NCBI RefSeq assembly: GCF_000315625.1 | Contig: NW_005434669.1 | Coordinates: forward strand, 469,238-533,237 | From: Guillardia theta CCMP2712 | Taxonomy: Eukaryota; Protista; Cryptophyta | Length of the DNA stretch: 64,000 bases | Reading direction: 5' to 3' | Part shown: positions 36,298 through 44,775 of the stretch, piece after piece | How positions within the stretch are numbered: the stretch's first letter is position 1 | Layout of the letters: each line of letters starts with the position of its first letter | Program-made: the position numbers and the translations under genes | The notes under the pieces: model-generated | Database searches by the model: none | Seen by the model: only the letters and a program-made list of their open reading frames with translations | What the model was told of the DNA's origin: nothing

Positions 36298-38100
36298 GAC
36301 ACTGTCGCACAGGCCAAACGGCGAGAAGAGAAAGACAGCGAGAACCAAACCTAAACCTGCCGACTGCTGTCCCCCAAACTTAACTGATACCTTCACTTAA
36401 CGGCGCGCAGGACAAGTCCCCCGCGCGGCCATGCCAGCGATGTCGCGGTGGCCGCCGCCGAAGGAATGAGACGCATACCGGGATGCACCCGCGATGATGG
36501 CAGCGTAGGACAGGGAGGCCTTGAGCTGACGGAAGATCCTGGACCGAATGCGTTTGCAAGTCGGATCACCTGAGACGTCTTGCGAGGCCGAGAGACCATC
36601 CAGCGCTGCCGTTTCCTTGTTCGCCGAGCGATCCGCCAGCCACCACAGAAAGCGCAACGCATCGTCCTGCAAGAGGCCATCAGTGCTGGCGATGATGGGA
36701 AGAAAGGCCTTTGGCGGGACGTGCTGAGCATATGCATTACGATGCCCTCGGATCTTCCGCTGTGCTGCCGCTTGCAGTTTGCTCCGAGCGAGGTCCGGTA
36801 TTCCATCATTGTCAAAAACATGTGACATGCTGAAGTCCAGGATTAACCCATGCCATCCGCCGCCAGTAGCCATCAGTTGTGGAAGTTCAAAGTCCCCTAC
36901 ATGATGATCTTCAGGGCCATGTTGGGAAACGTTCTGCCTGGTGCCGGGTACGCCTTGCACGTGGACGCGGCATCTCACTCCGGAATCTTTGATGAGGGTA
37001 CTGAGGACGGCATTGCACTTCTCATGCGCATCAGTCCATAACTGGCTGCGGTGCCTGCAGGTTGCCATGTGTGTGGTCCCCCCAGGATGACGAAGAAGAT
37101 GATGGCATCGATCGCAGTGCGGCGGGAGGTCAACCGGCAATCCATGAAGAAACTTGTCAGCGGCAGCCACCAAGCTGATGGGCTGCTGCTCAAAGATCCC
37201 AAGGTTTGTACTTTCCATAGTCGAGTGCCAAATCGTGCGCTGAGGGGTAAACTGAGACAGAAGTTCATCAACCGGGTGGCCTGGTACTCGAAGGGGAGTA
37301 GAGAAGCTGGAGTGGTGTGCCAACAAAGATCTCTGGCGCTCTGAAAGGTGAGCCCGAATACTGCGGAACCGGGGAAACTCCGAGAGGAACTGAGCCGTGA
37401 GCTCCCGCTGGGCGGGGATGAAAAGCGCACTGCCCGACGTCCCAAATAATTCAGGCGAGGGGATCCAGCCATTGTCGCACGCCTGAGGAAGCTCCGCCAA
37501 GGAGGTGTACGCCGAGATGCCCTGCTCCATCAAGTGCCTGTGAGTGTCCAAGAAGGCAGCAAGCATGGGGACAACATCCCCAGCGTCCGCTTGCTGCGGT
37601 TGGCGGATTCGAAGCTCAGTGTCAGAAATGATCCGGTGGAAGAGTGGCGGTGTAGGGAAAGTCCAATGCTGGAAGATGGCAATTTCACCCGCCCATTTGA
37701 GAAACTTGGCAGTCGCCGACCAGAATGCGGTGTAGGCCACGCCCTCCTGCGGGGTGAACCCATCTCCTCCAGCACTATAAGGCAACTGACGTTTGAAGTA
37801 GGCGAACTGAAGGTCAGATGGAGGGGTGCCAGGGGCAGGTTGCAGGACACTGAGATGAACCCTCCTGTGCCTGGTTCTGTGGCCACTGAAACACCTTCGC
37901 CAGGAGACGGAGATTCGCGACGTCAAAGCACTTGCACTGGGCAGCGGTCAAGGCCGGGGAGATTCCACGCAAGAAATATTGGAGGGTGGGAACGTGGGTC
38001 GTTTTCAAGAGCTGCTTGAGACCCAACGCAATGGGAAATTGTTCCAACTGGGTCAATTCAGCATTGAGGGCATTCACCTTGGCAGTGATAAACTCTGAGC
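36298..38100 (-). mobile_element. 5'-truncated non-LTR retrotransposon, CRE-like clade with restriction-like endonuclease; one frameshift near 37830-37880
   Basis: Intronless ORF: post-RT region (PTLQYFLRG..CFD; QLPYSAGGDG), CCHC knuckle CDRC-x11-H-x3-C, AHEKC (RH-like), VGDF..LILDFSMSH..KIRGH..FLPIIASTDG (PD-(D/E)xK-type RLE). The RT core is missing. Confidence 0.82.
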
Positions 38101-38196: not shown

Positions 38197-38935
38197 CAGA
38201 TTCGTCACGGCGCCAACCGTTGAATTGGTCCACCGTCAAGTCAACAGTTCGAAGTCATCAGAGTGGTGCGTGCCTTTTGCCGCCTGGCCGTGATGATTCT
38301 ACACCGGCCGCAACATCAACGTCAGGCTGGCGCCAAACTTCAACCTTGAGCAAAATCACTTAAGGTCTCGCTATCAGAATCACTGACCTGCATGGTTGCC
38401 ACTCCACCCTTTAGTAGGCTTCCGGCGTAGGAGATAGGTACTATAGTTTTAAACGACGTTTCGAAGCAACGGCCGTCCTTGTTCACAAGACCCGGTCATG
38501 TATTCCACCCCACCCCCTCCTGGGCCGGGAGCAAAGTGGTGCCGGAACTCCGAACTCAGGGGCTATTGCAAGCGTCTACAGACAGCTTTTAGCCCTATCT
38601 CAACGTACGTTGGAGGATGATGTTCGAAATAAAAGGTTTTCGGAATCTGGAAGGAGCTCCGATATTGCTAAAAATAATCTTTTCAAAGAATGAGGGAAAA
38701 CTGCTGACATCCGAATCCCATAAAAAACAGAGGAAGCATTTGTGCACATCCCAGTCCACGAAACCGAAAGGCAAAAAGTACACAAAGAAGGACAAGAGCA
38801 GAGGAAAGGAGACTCGTCAAGAACAATCTGAAAGCAAAGACTCATTCTCAAGCAGGAATACAAATCAATCTCTACTGTACATTACAGCTTCAATCTCAAA
38901 TTCATACTACTAAAAAACTCTCATTCGTAATCGAA

Positions 38936-39271
38936 ATGCAAGCCATCACAGACCCGAGCCAACTTTTCGAATGGGTCGGGAATTTGTTCCAGCAAAATCA
39001 AAATGGAGGCACTGCTCAACAAGCTAACGCTCTTCAGACATCACAACAGCGAGTATGTGCTCCCCGCTCTGTACTAAGACGAAACCGTGCTCGGAATGTC
39101 CCCAAAAGAGTAACGTTTTCTGTGGAAATCGCAAATAGTGTTACGATTCCGGTCAGCTGCATCTCTCCCAGCTTCAAATCAAGCAGAAATGTAAGATTGT
39201 CAAGACCCTGCCACCATCCGACATCACCGTCAGCATCTACCTCTCACAAACAAACTTTCTTGATGATGTAG
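38936..39271 (+). CDS. Small intronless protein, WVxxLF / SILK-like / RVxF family, paralog 1
   Basis: LFEWVGNLF, PRSVLRR, KRVTF; aligns by eye with the two neighbouring paralogs. Confidence 0.75.
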   Translation: MQAITDPSQLFEWVGNLFQQNQNGGTAQQANALQTSQQRVCAPRSVLRRNRARNVPKRVTFSVEIANSVTIPVSCISPSFKSSRNVRLSRPCHHPTSPSASTSHKQTFLMM

Positions 39272-39867
39272 TCGGCTATAAGTCACTCTAAGAATGTTAA
39301 ATTCCTTCATAGATTGTACATATCAATAAATTGCAGTTTGGCTCTATGCTTCTTGATATGAAATGAAATGCAAGTTTGGCATTGATCTGCATGATAAAAC
39401 TCATCTGTGGCTGGGAGAACCGATCGCTACAGATTAATTGCTTTTGATGCACCTTGTTGTTTTGAGAGAGTGCTCGTGCATTTGTGAAAGTGGATCTTAG
39501 TTCAATTTACAAATCATACATGAATCTTGTAAACAACTTCGTGCAAACATTTGAGACAGGTAAGACACAGAGTATAATGTTCATAGCGATGTAGAAACAA
39601 GGTGGTCTGTTTGAAAACATTGGAAAGATCTGGGCAATTGGATTCGTCGATTTGTGGCATATGCCATTTATGCGTCTTGATTTGAGAAAATGATTGAGTT
39701 TATCAGAACCAATGAGTTTGAACGATTGGGAGACTTACTCAAATTTACCACTTTACTTCAATTCATTGAATATTACTCTACAGTTCAATTATTTAGGTTA
39801 TTGAGTTTCAAGATTATAGTTATTGATCACAAAACAATTGCCTTGAATGAGCATACGATCATCCTTA

Positions 39868-40164
39868 TCAAGGCAAAATCGAACGTTCGATTGATGCACA
39901 AGCAGCTGATCGCCGTCTGGTGCAAGCTGACAACTTCACACTCTTTCTCCTTCTTCCGTCAGAGCATGTCCTTGTGCCATTTGTAATTTCGACGCAGAAT
40001 GTCACCCTCTTCTCTTGTTTACATTTGGAATATCCTCGACGAAGTGCCGATCTCAACTCCTTCAAAGGTTCGCTGGGCTCATCTTTCACGATAAACTGAT
40101 GTTCTGGTCCAAACAGTTGTTCGACCCATGCTAAAAGGGCGTTCGAATCTGCAATTGCTTGCAT
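39868..40164 (-). CDS. Small intronless protein, WVxxLF / SILK-like / RVxF family, paralog 2
   Basis: MQAIAD, LLAWVEQLF, LRSALRR, KRVTFCVEI. Confidence 0.75.
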   Translation of the reverse strand: MQAIADSNALLAWVEQLFGPEHQFIVKDEPSEPLKELRSALRRGYSKCKQEKRVTFCVEITNGTRTCSDGRRRKSVKLSACTRRRSAACASIERSILP

Positions 40165-40439
40165 GTGCAATATCGATTAATGCTTGGAAGCTTGTATGTT
40201 ACTTGTCTGCAAAAGAGTATATCTAAACGATCTTCTCTGCACAAAGGCGATTGTTTGTTGAAATCGAAGGGGATTGCAAAGTTTTCCCCTCGCTTCTTCC
40301 CATTTACCTTGCTTCACTCACCCACAGGGACGACCCGGTAGGGGGTCGGAATCTATACAGGGAATAATCAAGGTATGGTCATGGGATATGGGTGGGTAGG
40401 GGTAGTTTCAAGGGGAAAGATCCGTATGGTCCTGACTGT

Positions 40440-41090
40440 GAGTTTTTAACCTGACACGAATTGGGAGTTGCTGACTCCGATCGGCGTCTGGTCAGAACAG
40501 AACGTCAGCCGGAGCTCCGATTTATTTAACTCCAGCGGCCAGCCGGGGAACTTTCCGTGACCGTCTGACGGACGTGACCGGTACCGAACTTCGAGTTGAA
40601 CTCGCCGACTTGTACTGACGGTCCTACTGATCTTTAACTTTTTTAACTTTGAGTGAAGATCCGGACGGAGGCTCAGAGCCGGCGGAGTCCCGGAGTCCGG
40701 GACCACGGGTCGGCGCCGGACCGGCGGCAGCGGCCGCTCGCCGGGCCGGGCCGGGCCGGTCCGTTGCCGCGGCCAGACGCCGCGGCGTGACGCCTGGCTA
40801 GTACCGGGACGGCCCGTGACGGTCCGATCGGGCCCCGGTCCGAGCGCCGCGGGCGGCGGCCGCCGCTCAGTCCGGCCGCCCGATGATCATTGAATGGGGC
40901 CGCCGCTAGTACCGGGGCCCGGACCACGTCTCAGGCCAGAGTCACTGGCGGCCGGGCCGGGCCGGGCCCGGGGGGCAGGGGCGGCCGCCGCGTGACGGAC
41001 AGTGACGGTCCGAGTCAGGCCGGGCCGCGGCCGGGCCCGTTGGCCAGTGGGCCGCCCGGGCCCCCGGGGCCGGAAGGTGGGGGGTCATAG
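40440..41090. repeat. GC-rich quasi-palindromic island with a degenerate micro-repeat copy (40621-40654)
   Basis: Long CCGGG/GGCC arrays; GTCCTACTGATCTTTAACTTTTTTAACTTTGAGT. Confidence 0.75.
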
Positions 41091-42491
41091 CGTTGTCACT
41101 CCAATTTCGGAATGGTTTCAAGTTGCCTGTCTCTCTCATTGTTGAACTTGAACAACGATATTTACACCAAACATTTGGAAAATCTGTTCGCACGCCATGA
41201 AAATTGAACACCCTACCCCCTTCCACGGATCCCTACCGGCTTCCATGTCCCTGAATCGTTGAATTCAATTCAATTTTCAGACCTACTGATTTAAGGGAAC
41301 CCCACCCTTCCCCCATCATGCAAGTCTCCGAGACAGCAACCTGTCGAGGAGGAAGGCTCCCCTTCGAGCCGCCCTTTTCCTTGGGTCTGCTCCTATTCAA
41401 ACTCGGTCGGGCTCTGCATGGCACGGGGCTCAAGTCAAGGGGTTCCCAGCACTCCCTTTTAAAACACATGTTACACGTTGGTATTGAAGTTTCCGCACCC
41501 CCTTGGGACGGTACCCCTGCGACTGTTATTATTATTATGCTCCTGCTGCCTACACCCCTCCCGAGTCAAGGGGCACGACCCCTACCCCCGTCACGTCCTC
41601 CAACGTATTATTGGCCCACCAGACCCAGAAGGACACACCGGTGCGAATTTTTCCCGTTCCGCCACACAATCTAAACCCACACCCACCCTTCGAAGCTATA
41701 CCATTTCTGTCGTACCCCCACCCCTTCTCATGAAGTTTACCCCTATTTTATGTCATCCAACGTTTCTACCCCTACCCCGCAATTTTAGGACCCCCTACAG
41801 ATAAGGCCACCCCATGTCTATAGCTCCATATCTCAATACGGGCCCAGACCATCCCTCCTCCACGTTTCCTCCATTGTACAACAATCCCTTGCTCTCCCTT
41901 CCCCGCTCCCTTGCCCTTCTCTTCTAGTTGATCTGAAGTTTTCTATCCGCAACCCCGTTACCTTTCTTTTGCTGCCTTCGATCTTTTGCTCCATATTTCC
42001 AAAATTCCATGTTCTTATCGACTTGCAGGCAATGTACCGTTTCTGTCTGAGACTGCAATGTCCTGAAAGCTACTCTCCGGCACCTTTTCTACCCGCTTTG
42101 TTTCAGTTACTCGCCTCTGTTGTGCTGAAACACAATATTGTGTTTGTGCTTCAAGCGTAAAACATGATATTTGTTTGTGTTGCAAAACATTGTTGAGAAA
42201 TTTGTTGGGGGGACGTCTCAGGAAATGTTGTAGATTGCAGAGATGTCTAAAACAGCTTCTGATCACCTGTCCCACACACTTCAGATTTCAAAAAACATTC
42301 CCTATATCTCGCATGAGATCATGAGAATATGGAACTCAAAATCGATTATATGATTCTCGAAGCCTGTAGTCGTGTGATGTCGAAACTTGTGTTAAAATTG
42401 GGACATGTTTTCCTGTGGATTGTTTTTGTGTCAGGGATTGACCTTTGTTCTTGTCAGATCCCCAACGTGCTACTGCTTGCGGTAGGCAACC

Positions 42492-42992
42492 ATGGCAGCA
42501 GAGTCCGACCACAAATCAGAGAACAAATCACCCGGTCCGAACACAGTCAATGCGGGAAAGATCTTCGAATGGGTTGGGTCCTTATTTTTCAATCAGACAG
42601 AAATAGGACCTGCTGGGACGACCTTTGAACATGATCCAGCTGCTCCTGCGATACACCATGGCCCAGGATCAACTTGCAACGTTGATTTGCATCAAGTTCA
42701 AGCTCATCAGAAGACCATGAGCGTTTCTGCAGTCGACATGGTGAAACCCCGTTCTGCCATGCGAACTACATTTCGATCTCGCAAACAGCAAAAACGAGTT
42801 CGTTTCTGTACAGCAATTGAAAACCTGCAAACTTCAGGATCGAAGGAAAAACTTAGTGAGCAACACCACCATTACACAAGGTCTAGGAGTTGCTATCCAG
42901 AAACTCTTGCTCACGACAGTGAACAACTCATGTCAAGCATCAAGTCGAATCGTTGCCGATCAATGAGTGTGAGAGAATTCGTGATATTCTGA
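42492..42992 (+). CDS. Small intronless protein, WVxxLF / SILK-like / RVxF family, paralog 3
   Basis: IFEWVGSLF, PRSAMR, KRVRF. Confidence 0.75.
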   Translation: MAAESDHKSENKSPGPNTVNAGKIFEWVGSLFFNQTEIGPAGTTFEHDPAAPAIHHGPGSTCNVDLHQVQAHQKTMSVSAVDMVKPRSAMRTTFRSRKQQKRVRFCTAIENLQTSGSKEKLSEQHHHYTRSRSCYPETLAHDSEQLMSSIKSNRCRSMSVREFVIF

Positions 42993-43229
42993 ATGCTTGT
43001 ATATTGATTAAACTTCAATTTAAACGTGAATATGTGTTTCAGATGATTGTCAGACGTTTTATTGAATAGGTCTATTTCCAAATGGAGTCTTCTGATAATT
43101 GGATCTGTTTTTGGTAGGTGAAAATTTCTCGGGATAGAAACAAACTTTGCATCTTAATGCTATCCATCTTTTTCTATTGGGAGGGATGTAAAGAAGGCTG
43201 AAAGAATAAGGCTGGGTTCAAGTTCTGCT

Positions 43230-44775
43230 TTAGTCCTCAGAGAACGTTGACTTGAAGAGCTCGAAAAGCATTAAGCTTATCGCCATCTGCTCATTACATC
43301 AGAACATCACGTACATTGAGAATCAAAACGAGATGATACCTGCGGGGCAAGACGTCCTACACGTCCTTGTACACCCTAGGCGATAGGAAATAATGAGAGA
43401 ACGTACACGTGAATTGGAGGAAATTTACCCTGTAGAATGCAGCTAAACGATCTTCTCTCCAAAGCTCGATGGCTGCTTGTCTGATTCCAACTATTCCAGA
43501 TCAGGAACATCTACTAAACGTTTTTAAAGATGCAACCTGAAATTCGTCGTGACTGTATTCTTGTCTTGATTGTATCCAATGGCGTCGTGATACTGGAGGC
43601 AGCAACACCCTAAAAGCATGAACGTCGAAAGAAAGAAAAATGGGGAAACAAATCATTTTACAGCAAAGAGTCCAGCCAACAAGTCATCAAGTGGAGAAAG
43701 CTTCAAACTTGCATCTTTGTTTGCTTTGGCCCGAAACTGTACGACTGATTTTCTAATCTATTAGAGACGGACTGTGTCAACACCTAAGCCTAGTGAATAA
43801 GATTACCTGTGAATATGTTGTGAAATAAATTGCTCCAAAGGGAATATCCCTCATCCAACAAGCGCGCGAACCCTTTGATTGGCAAAAGAACCCATTTCAA
43901 AAACAAGACCTTGATCATCAGATGAAATGGACCTGATATAAACCTCCGAATCCTATCTGGCTCACCAGTTTCCTAACTGAGCCAGCATTGCTGCCCTCGA
44001 TCTGCAACGGGACATTTTTTAGAATCCGAATATGTTGCCTTGCTTTCTCTGAGTCACCTGTTGCAAAATCTTGACTCTTTCCATGGGATTGGTCACTATG
44101 ATCTGGGTGAACCCTGCAAACGCTCCTGCAAAGATCTCTGCTGGGAGTGGGAGGTCCTACACCCTCAAGGTGTCACTTTCGATCAACCGGGCGTAAATGT
44201 GCAATAGAGTACCTTCTGCGGGCATTTCAAAACCTTGCTCAAAATGTTTTTTGAAGCATCATTCATACCAATGCAAAATGCACCTGAACAAACATTACAA
44301 GGTGCTTTGTTGAGGAAACGGCAAAACCTTCAGGGACGGAGCCGAGAAGAACTGGAGTACAACCGTTGAAGAGAGACAAAAGTCCTTCCTCTCGAGCAAC
44401 CTTGGTGATTGTTCTGAAAATTCCAGTGTATTGCTTGCCATTGATGTTTGCGAGACTTCCTTGAATTCTCGTTTTTGCCAGGTCAATAGGGAACACGGCT
44501 GTCGAAGCTATTCCACTTGCTATGCCACTCATCATGAAATCCTTCCACCTCGCACCTGCCGCAGGCATTTCGAAAGAGAGCTTTGCCTTCATAAGCATTT
44601 CGGCAGGTTTTGAGAAATCTAAGAGAGTAGATGGAGGGGTGGCAAACCAGGGAATGTTGTTTTTCCGTGCATTCATCGAATTAACGTCAAGCATCGCTGT
44701 GGATGATGCCGAAATTTCCAAGACGAGAAGGAAAATGAATGCGCCGAGCGCAGATTGAGATGTAGTTCCTAGCAT
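43230..44775 (-). CDS. Mitochondrial carrier family (SLC25) protein with N-terminal signal-like extension, multi-exon
   Basis: Three PxD/ExxK motifs ([22 protein letters not shown]), [10 protein letters not shown] and QYTGIF..REEG; ends [12 protein letters not shown]. Confidence 0.9.

Follow-up and report, generated by a model that had tools for sequence, protein, structure and literature searches.

A tandem cluster of three intronless paralogs in Guillardia theta encodes small disordered proteins with a conserved candidate PP1-docking motif

The gene cluster

Within a 64,000-nucleotide (nt) stretch of contig NW_005434669.1 of the cryptophyte Guillardia theta CCMP2712 (positions 469,238 to 533,237, forward strand), hereafter the window, to whose first letter all coordinates below refer unless another contig is named, lie three small open reading frames (ORFs), designated ORF1, ORF2 and ORF3, whose products had been proposed to form a new family of regulators of protein phosphatase 1 (PP1). 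The three genes are paralogous and intronless, form a tandem cluster, are expressed and show purifying selection; they encode modular, largely disordered proteins, a family detected only in Guillardia and Hanusia. PP1 owes its specificity to hundreds of unrelated disordered partners that evolve fast, and hardly any have been described, to our knowledge, beyond animals, fungi, plants and apicomplexans. All three frames, claimed at 98-166 amino acids (aa), are present at the positions given by the original prediction, and a mRNA contig covers one of them:

38936-39271, plus strand: ORF1 (paralog 1), 111 aa, isoelectric point (pI) 11.6; no Hanusia ortholog found
39868-40164, minus strand: ORF2 (paralog 2), 98 aa from its first ATG; convergent with ORF1
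42492-42992, plus strand: ORF3 (paralog 3), 166 aa, with a 17-residue N-terminal extension and a longer linker
41712-43030, plus strand: JGI mRNA contig carrying ORF3 (L007), 1327 nt, unspliced, with poly(A) past 43030

The mechanically called frame of ORF2 begins two codons before the first ATG, at a TTG, and ORF3 is divergent from ORF2, with a spacer of 2.3 kb between them. Overall identity between the paralogs is 31-35%. By BLASTP, ORF1 matches ORF2 with an E value of 6e-9 and ORF3 with 2e-4, the latter across the N-terminal helix only, and when a profile of the ORF1/ORF2 group was compared by hhalign with a profile of the ORF3 group, the central block was aligned with a probability of 94% (E 1.1e-7). 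Since the BLASTP matches in the helix are joined by an independent profile-profile match in the central block, these alignments identify the three genes as true paralogs whose similarity is beyond chance. A profile search of the whole genome (an 87.1-Mb assembly of 669 contigs) returned three copies, all of them in this cluster.

Hanusia phi holds an ortholog of ORF3 (P0004, 161 aa, 68% identical) and one of ORF2 (P0005, 100 aa, 58% identical), and therefore the duplications are older than the Guillardia/Hanusia split. As the first and last residues of both proteins match those of ORF3 and ORF2, respectively, the frames of these two genes are complete as read from the genome.

Transcription, selection and coding status

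The ORF3 mRNA contig is identical to the window over 1319 nt (41712-43030), free of gaps, and then continues into a run of A that is not templated, as the genome reads ATATGTG at the junction; thus, it represents a polyadenylated, unspliced transcript of ORF3. The poly(A) addition site lies 38 nt after the ORF3 stop codon, and an ATTAAA hexamer is found at 43007-43012, 18 nt upstream of it. ORF3 is therefore both transcribed and polyadenylated, and the description of the genes as intronless holds directly for this paralog, whose mRNA is colinear with the genome, while for ORF2 and ORF3 it is consistent with the protein starts and ends found in Hanusia. Transcripts from Guillardia itself were obtained for ORF3 and none for ORF1 or ORF2.

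Exact-protein look-ups for ORF1, ORF2, P0004 and P0005 matched no contigs, and selection was assessed at codon level for ORF1 only, using Logan contig L004 (929 nt, run SRR23967302), which derives from a close relative and is colinear with window positions 38607-39535. Identity amounts to 89% over the whole contig and to about 96% within the ORF1 coding sequence (CDS), where 12 codons are changed, 10 of them synonymously and 2 non-synonymously. This ratio, together with the better conservation of the CDS relative to the whole contig, indicates purifying selection on ORF1. A 194-aa form called on the same contig (P0001) was rejected as a gene-caller artefact, because its N-terminal 83 residues span two TGA stops; the true product is thus the 111-aa ORF. 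The source of this contig is much closer to the genome studied here than Hanusia phi is, so that public reads include a second Guillardia-like strain or species.

We regard it as very probable that ORF1-3 constitute a real protein-coding family. The competing explanation, namely that the frames are open by chance, within duplicated non-coding DNA or a non-coding RNA, would accommodate the shortness of the ORFs, the lack of a Pfam domain and the fact that the exact ORF1 sequence is not in the protein collection. A further observation weighs on the same side. Ahead of ORF3, the mRNA contig carries an unspliced leader of 780 nt (41712-42491) with 15 upstream ATGs, which is odd for efficient translation, and a 99-aa upstream ORF (42329-42628) overlaps the ORF3 start in a different frame; either the true start site is situated more 3' and separate transcripts were fused during assembly, or ORF3 translation is under strong upstream-ORF control. 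Against the non-coding explanation stand the predominance of synonymous changes in a CDS much better conserved than its flanks, the preservation of frame, start and stop in orthologs at 58-68% identity, the retention of ordered motifs between paralogs sharing only about a third of their residues, and the placement of the poly(A) site so shortly past the ORF3 stop. Consequently, we consider it highly improbable and close to refuted.

Modular architecture of the encoded proteins

The ordered motifs noted by the original prediction were borne out in all three products, where LFEWVGNLF/LLAWVEQLF/IFEWVGSLF is followed by RSVLRR/RSALRR/RSAMR and then by KRVTF/KRVTF/KRVRF; the distance between the last two, given as about 8-10 residues, was measured as 8-9, and the additional likenesses of ORF1 and ORF2 (MQAI.D, VEI.N and V[RK]LS) are likewise present. 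These elements map as follows:

38954-39004, plus strand: N-terminal amphipathic helix of ORF1, residues 7-23, with LFEWVGNLF (AlphaFold2, predicted local distance difference test score (pLDDT) 74-79)
39065-39136, plus strand: central basic block of ORF1, residues 44-67, RSVLR-x8-KRVTF-SVEI-AN, with KRVTF at 39104-39118
40111-40146, minus strand: N-terminal helix region of ORF2, residues 7-18, LLAWVEQLF, placed by alignment to the ORF1 helix
39979-40053, minus strand: central block of ORF2, residues 38-62, RSALR-x9-KRVTF-CVEI-TN, with KRVTF at 39997-40011
42552-42587, plus strand: amphipathic helix of ORF3, residues 21-32, IFEWVGSLFF (AlphaFold2 helix 21-32)
42750-42824, plus strand: central block of ORF3, residues 87-111, RSAMR-x9-KRVRF-CTAI-EN, with KRVRF at 42792-42806

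In the AlphaFold2 models of ORF1 and ORF3, which were built on family alignments, a single helix is predicted per protein (residues 7-23 and 21-32, respectively) and the remainder is predicted to lack structure. The models average a pLDDT of 52-58, which climbs locally to 62-74 across the K[RK]VxF block; in ORF1, the central block reaches 72-74 with no secondary structure. The amphipathic nature that had been proposed for the N-terminal helix agrees with these models and with hydrophobic moments of 0.51 in ORF1 and 0.45 in ORF3, values reached by 0.4% and 1.5% of shuffled sequences, respectively, the helix region of ORF2 being less amphipathic than the other two.

The proteins are basic (pI 9.2-11.6, with 13-21 Lys plus Arg) and share a common modular build. 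The helix, of 12-17 residues, follows the pattern hydrophobic-hydrophobic-x-W-V-x-x-[LF]-F and is joined by a linker of variable length (25 to 60 residues) to a central block of the form R-[SP]-[VA]-[LM]-R followed, at a constant distance of 8-9 residues, by K-[RK]-V-[TR]-F-x-x-x-I-x-N. Twelve alignment columns are invariant in six sequences, comprising M1 and A3, the W, V and F of the helix, and seven columns of the central block: both Arg of R-x-x-x-R, the K, V and F of K[RK]VxF, and the I and N of x3-I-x-N. An R[RS]xS site lies 28-30 residues past the motif Phe in ORF2, ORF3 and both Hanusia orthologs, and every member terminates in a short hydrophobic stretch. Between ORF3 and its Hanusia ortholog, the block AVDMVKPRSAMRTT.RSRKQ.KRVRFCTAIEN is wholly conserved, RSRSCYPE.LA.DSEQL is common to both, and the C-terminal NRCRSMSVREFVIF is identical.

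Distribution of the family

Word-index protein searches with profiles of three and five sequences found no relatives outside Guillardia/Hanusia, and an exhaustive profile search of 1.84 billion protein cluster representatives recovered only sequences of these two genera, in agreement with the lineage-specific family that had been anticipated. Among metagenome contigs there was no match to the back-translated motif nor to an exact 31-nt word of ORF1. Because short disordered proteins diverge fast, and provided that other cryptophyte sets were covered, two readings are possible: the family may be confined to the Guillardia/Hanusia clade or, elsewhere, may have diverged past detection.

The K[RK]VxF block as a candidate PP1-docking motif

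At one aligned position, all six members match the Wakula (loose), Meiselbach (strict) and Hendrickx expressions for the RVxF motif, and at that same position all six fit the consensus [KR][KR][VI]x[FW] (PMC11728760). The K, V and F of the motif are invariant across orthologs and paralogs, with the Hanusia ORF2 ortholog (KKVTF) still fitting, so that the motif first noticed in three proteins is conserved through the wider family (6/6 sequences). It is situated in a region that AlphaFold2 predicts to be disordered and accessible, and is preceded by basic residues.

The genome also encodes at least two PP1-type catalytic subunits (PP1c), recognised by PF16891 at 88.7 and 50.7 bits:

G000:C18:470566-473709 (L005): intron-containing PP1c gene, PF16891 match
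G000:C235:40969-44064 (L006): intron-containing PP1c gene, PF16891 match

Their exons carry GDIHGQ, GDYVDRG, LRGNHE, SAPNYC and LMCSFQV, the last of which we take to be the strand bearing the RVxF-groove residues Cys291 and Phe293 of human PP1. In the first of these genes (L005), the frame continuing beyond the RAHQV exon enters a proline-rich low-complexity stretch, presumably an intron.

The original prediction had also placed a SILK-like motif upstream of the docking motif. None of the six members matches [GS]IL[RK], the corresponding strings being SVLR, SALR, PALR and SAMR; Ser is replaced by Pro in the Hanusia ORF2 ortholog, and the position of Ile is occupied by Ala in four of the six and otherwise by Val. 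The SILK reading was therefore rejected, and this second PP1 motif is unsupported by the sequences; what is conserved at the site is R-x-x-[LM]-R. A MyPhoNE motif, R-x-x-Q-[VIL]-[KR]-x-[YW], was likewise rejected, as none of the six matches it and agreement with the helix is confined to the aliphatic and Trp positions.

Comparison with known PP1 partners

Searches for a relationship to described regulators were negative. A Pfam scan retrieved no family for ORF1 and ORF3 at E values up to 1 and only two unrelated sub-threshold matches for ORF2, with no significant match of ORF1-3 to DARPP-32/inhibitor-1, IPP-2, PPI_Ypi1, PP1c_bdg or other known PP1 regulator families, and the family profile found no match among PDB chain sequences at E up to 10. 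In the ESM Atlas, ORF2 retrieved bacterial helix-turn-helix clusters at feature scores of 0.77-0.80, and structure matches to histidine-kinase helices were obtained with a model pLDDT of 0.43; both were rejected as noise.

Generic disordered RVxF-type PP1 partners such as NIPP1, PNUTS, spinophilin and KNL1 share with ORF1-3 a family-conserved [KR][KR]VxF in a disordered basic stretch and a modular organization that could allow a distinct element, in this case the N-terminal helix, to serve in targeting. The Guillardia proteins differ from them in having no sequence or profile relationship and no SILK or MyPhoNE match, and they are much smaller than most PP1 targeting subunits.

Inhibitor-1 and DARPP-32 (PPP1R1) carry KIQF followed by RRRRPT with Thr34/35. 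Like them, ORF1-3 are small and disordered and possess a candidate docking motif, which in ORF2 and ORF3 is followed by a putative basophilic-kinase site, with K[RK]VxF and then R[RS]xS at 28-30 residues, as compared with some 20-30 residues in the PPP1R1 proteins; ORF1 differs in having no such site. Further differences are the absence of a Pfam match at E up to 1, a docking motif that is central and not N-terminal, and, in ORF2 and ORF3, a putative Ser acceptor outside any RRRRP context, so that the likeness of these two proteins to inhibitor-1/DARPP-32 is an analogy at most.

In the PPP1R15 group (GADD34, CReP, viral ICP34.5 and DP71L), the motif context is [RK]V[RT]F-x3-V-x-[VE], which K[RK]V[TR]F-x3-I-x-N resembles in placing an aliphatic residue four positions past the Phe; there is no Pfam match at E up to 1 and no further similarity. 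Finally, inhibitor-2, which combines SILK, RVxF-like and HYNE motifs with about 26 disordered residues between the first two, is also a small disordered protein with a docking motif, for which the proposed upstream motif of ORF1-3 suggested a parallel; however, SILK is found in none of the six members, there is no IPP-2 Pfam match and the motif spacing is 8-9 residues.

Proposed function and alternative explanations

The best single hypothesis for these proteins, which we put forward as plausible yet tentative, is that they dock to PP1 through the K[RK]VxF block. According to this hypothesis, the block would occupy the RVxF groove of PP1c in the form of an extended strand and the N-terminal helix would bind a second partner or surface, which would make the proteins small subunits that target or regulate PP1. 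In ORF2 and ORF3, the downstream basophilic serine lies at a spacing where a tethered site reaches the PP1 active site, and could thereby function as a PP1-controlled phospho-switch, by serving either as a substrate held by the tether or in the manner of the inhibitor-1 pseudosubstrate.

Several points weigh against PP1 docking. RVxF is a degenerate motif, the strict form of which occurred in 1-3% and the loose form in 13-18% of composition-matched shuffles, and a single occurrence therefore means little; the weight of the match comes instead from the preservation of K, V and F at one position in paralogs that are otherwise about 70% diverged. Many proteins carrying RVxF-type strings do not bind PP1, and on sequence grounds this conservation marks the block as important and does not identify PP1 as its partner. 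The proposed second PP1 motif fails its consensus throughout the family, the R[RS]xS site is missing downstream of the motif in ORF1, and no sequence or profile link to known PP1 regulator families emerged from Pfam, PDB, the ESM Atlas or the 1.84-billion profile search. The long leader ahead of ORF3, rich in upstream ATGs, and the recovery of a Guillardia transcript for ORF3 alone count on this side too. The main rival proposes that the basic block is unrelated to PP1 and is a target or pseudosubstrate of a basophilic (PKA/AGC/CaMK-type) kinase, a nuclear localization signal or a nucleic-acid-binding patch, the RVxF match being coincidental. KRVTF fits the phospho-acceptor consensus of PKA/AGC-type kinases (R/K-R/K-x-S/T-hydrophobic), ORF2 and its ortholog contain further RRKS and RRRS sites, and the basic composition of the family speaks for the same role. 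Nevertheless, in the ORF3 lineage Arg replaces Thr at the x position of the motif, and since KRVRF offers no phospho-acceptor and yet keeps K, V and F, it is the Val and Phe that appear to be selected, which favours a docking motif rather than a kinase site and matches the RVxF signature; moreover, a plain nuclear localization signal or nucleic-acid patch would not need the invariant V-x-F-x3-I-x-N. We consider a role unrelated to PP1 somewhat less likely than PP1 docking, to which it is the principal alternative.

Another possibility is that the proteins do dock to PP1, as substrates rather than regulators, with the RVxF motif tethering their own phospho-serines and the real activity residing in the helix and the C-terminal tail. 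Dephosphorylation of tethered sites by PP1 is reported to be most efficient 20-30 residues from the docking motif (preprint 10.64898/2026.09.09.750541), and the serines of the R[RS]xS sites in ORF2, ORF3 and the two orthologs, at 28-30 residues, are consistent with a tethered substrate site or, by inference from their spacing, with an inhibitor-1-like switch. Conversely, no such site exists in ORF1, the proteins are very small and contain no other recognisable functional domain, and PP1 partners are not sharply divided into substrates and regulators; a purely substrate role thus seems quite improbable. The most elaborate form of the docking hypothesis, which we rate as a speculative and still more doubtful proposal, is that of independently evolved, cryptophyte-specific PP1 regulators. 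In these, the extended, fixed-spacing string R-x-x-[LM]-R, 8-9 residues, K[RK]VxF-x3-I-x-N would contact PP1 beyond the RVxF groove, an inhibitor-1-like phospho-serine switch would operate 28-30 residues downstream in two of the three lineages, and the WV..LF helix would bring PP1 to a lineage-specific structure.

If a cryptophyte-specific partner family were verified, it would show how short motifs give rise to new PP1 regulators and would offer a first entry point to the regulation of phosphatases in a secondary-endosymbiotic alga; with docking through the RVxF motif, the family would join the well-known disordered PP1 partners bearing this motif and would not represent a new type of system. 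Should the proteins not bind PP1, the cluster would still represent annotated orphan genes for which selection is clear and the modular build is defined. Either way, the finding bears on a narrow lineage only.

Genomic neighbourhood

The spacer between ORF2 and ORF3 is very G+C-rich at 40640-41090, with GGGCCG-type runs. That positions 40340-41800 might be a dispersed repeat was considered and rejected, as the sole other match in the genome is 85 nt long at 78% identity. Just upstream of the cluster, on the minus strand, lies a 509-aa ORF (36397-37926) with no Pfam match, and on its other side an exon-like ORF at 44263-44775 (minus strand) encodes a mitochondrial carrier repeat (PF00153, E 1.4e-17), corresponding to an ordinary neighbouring gene.

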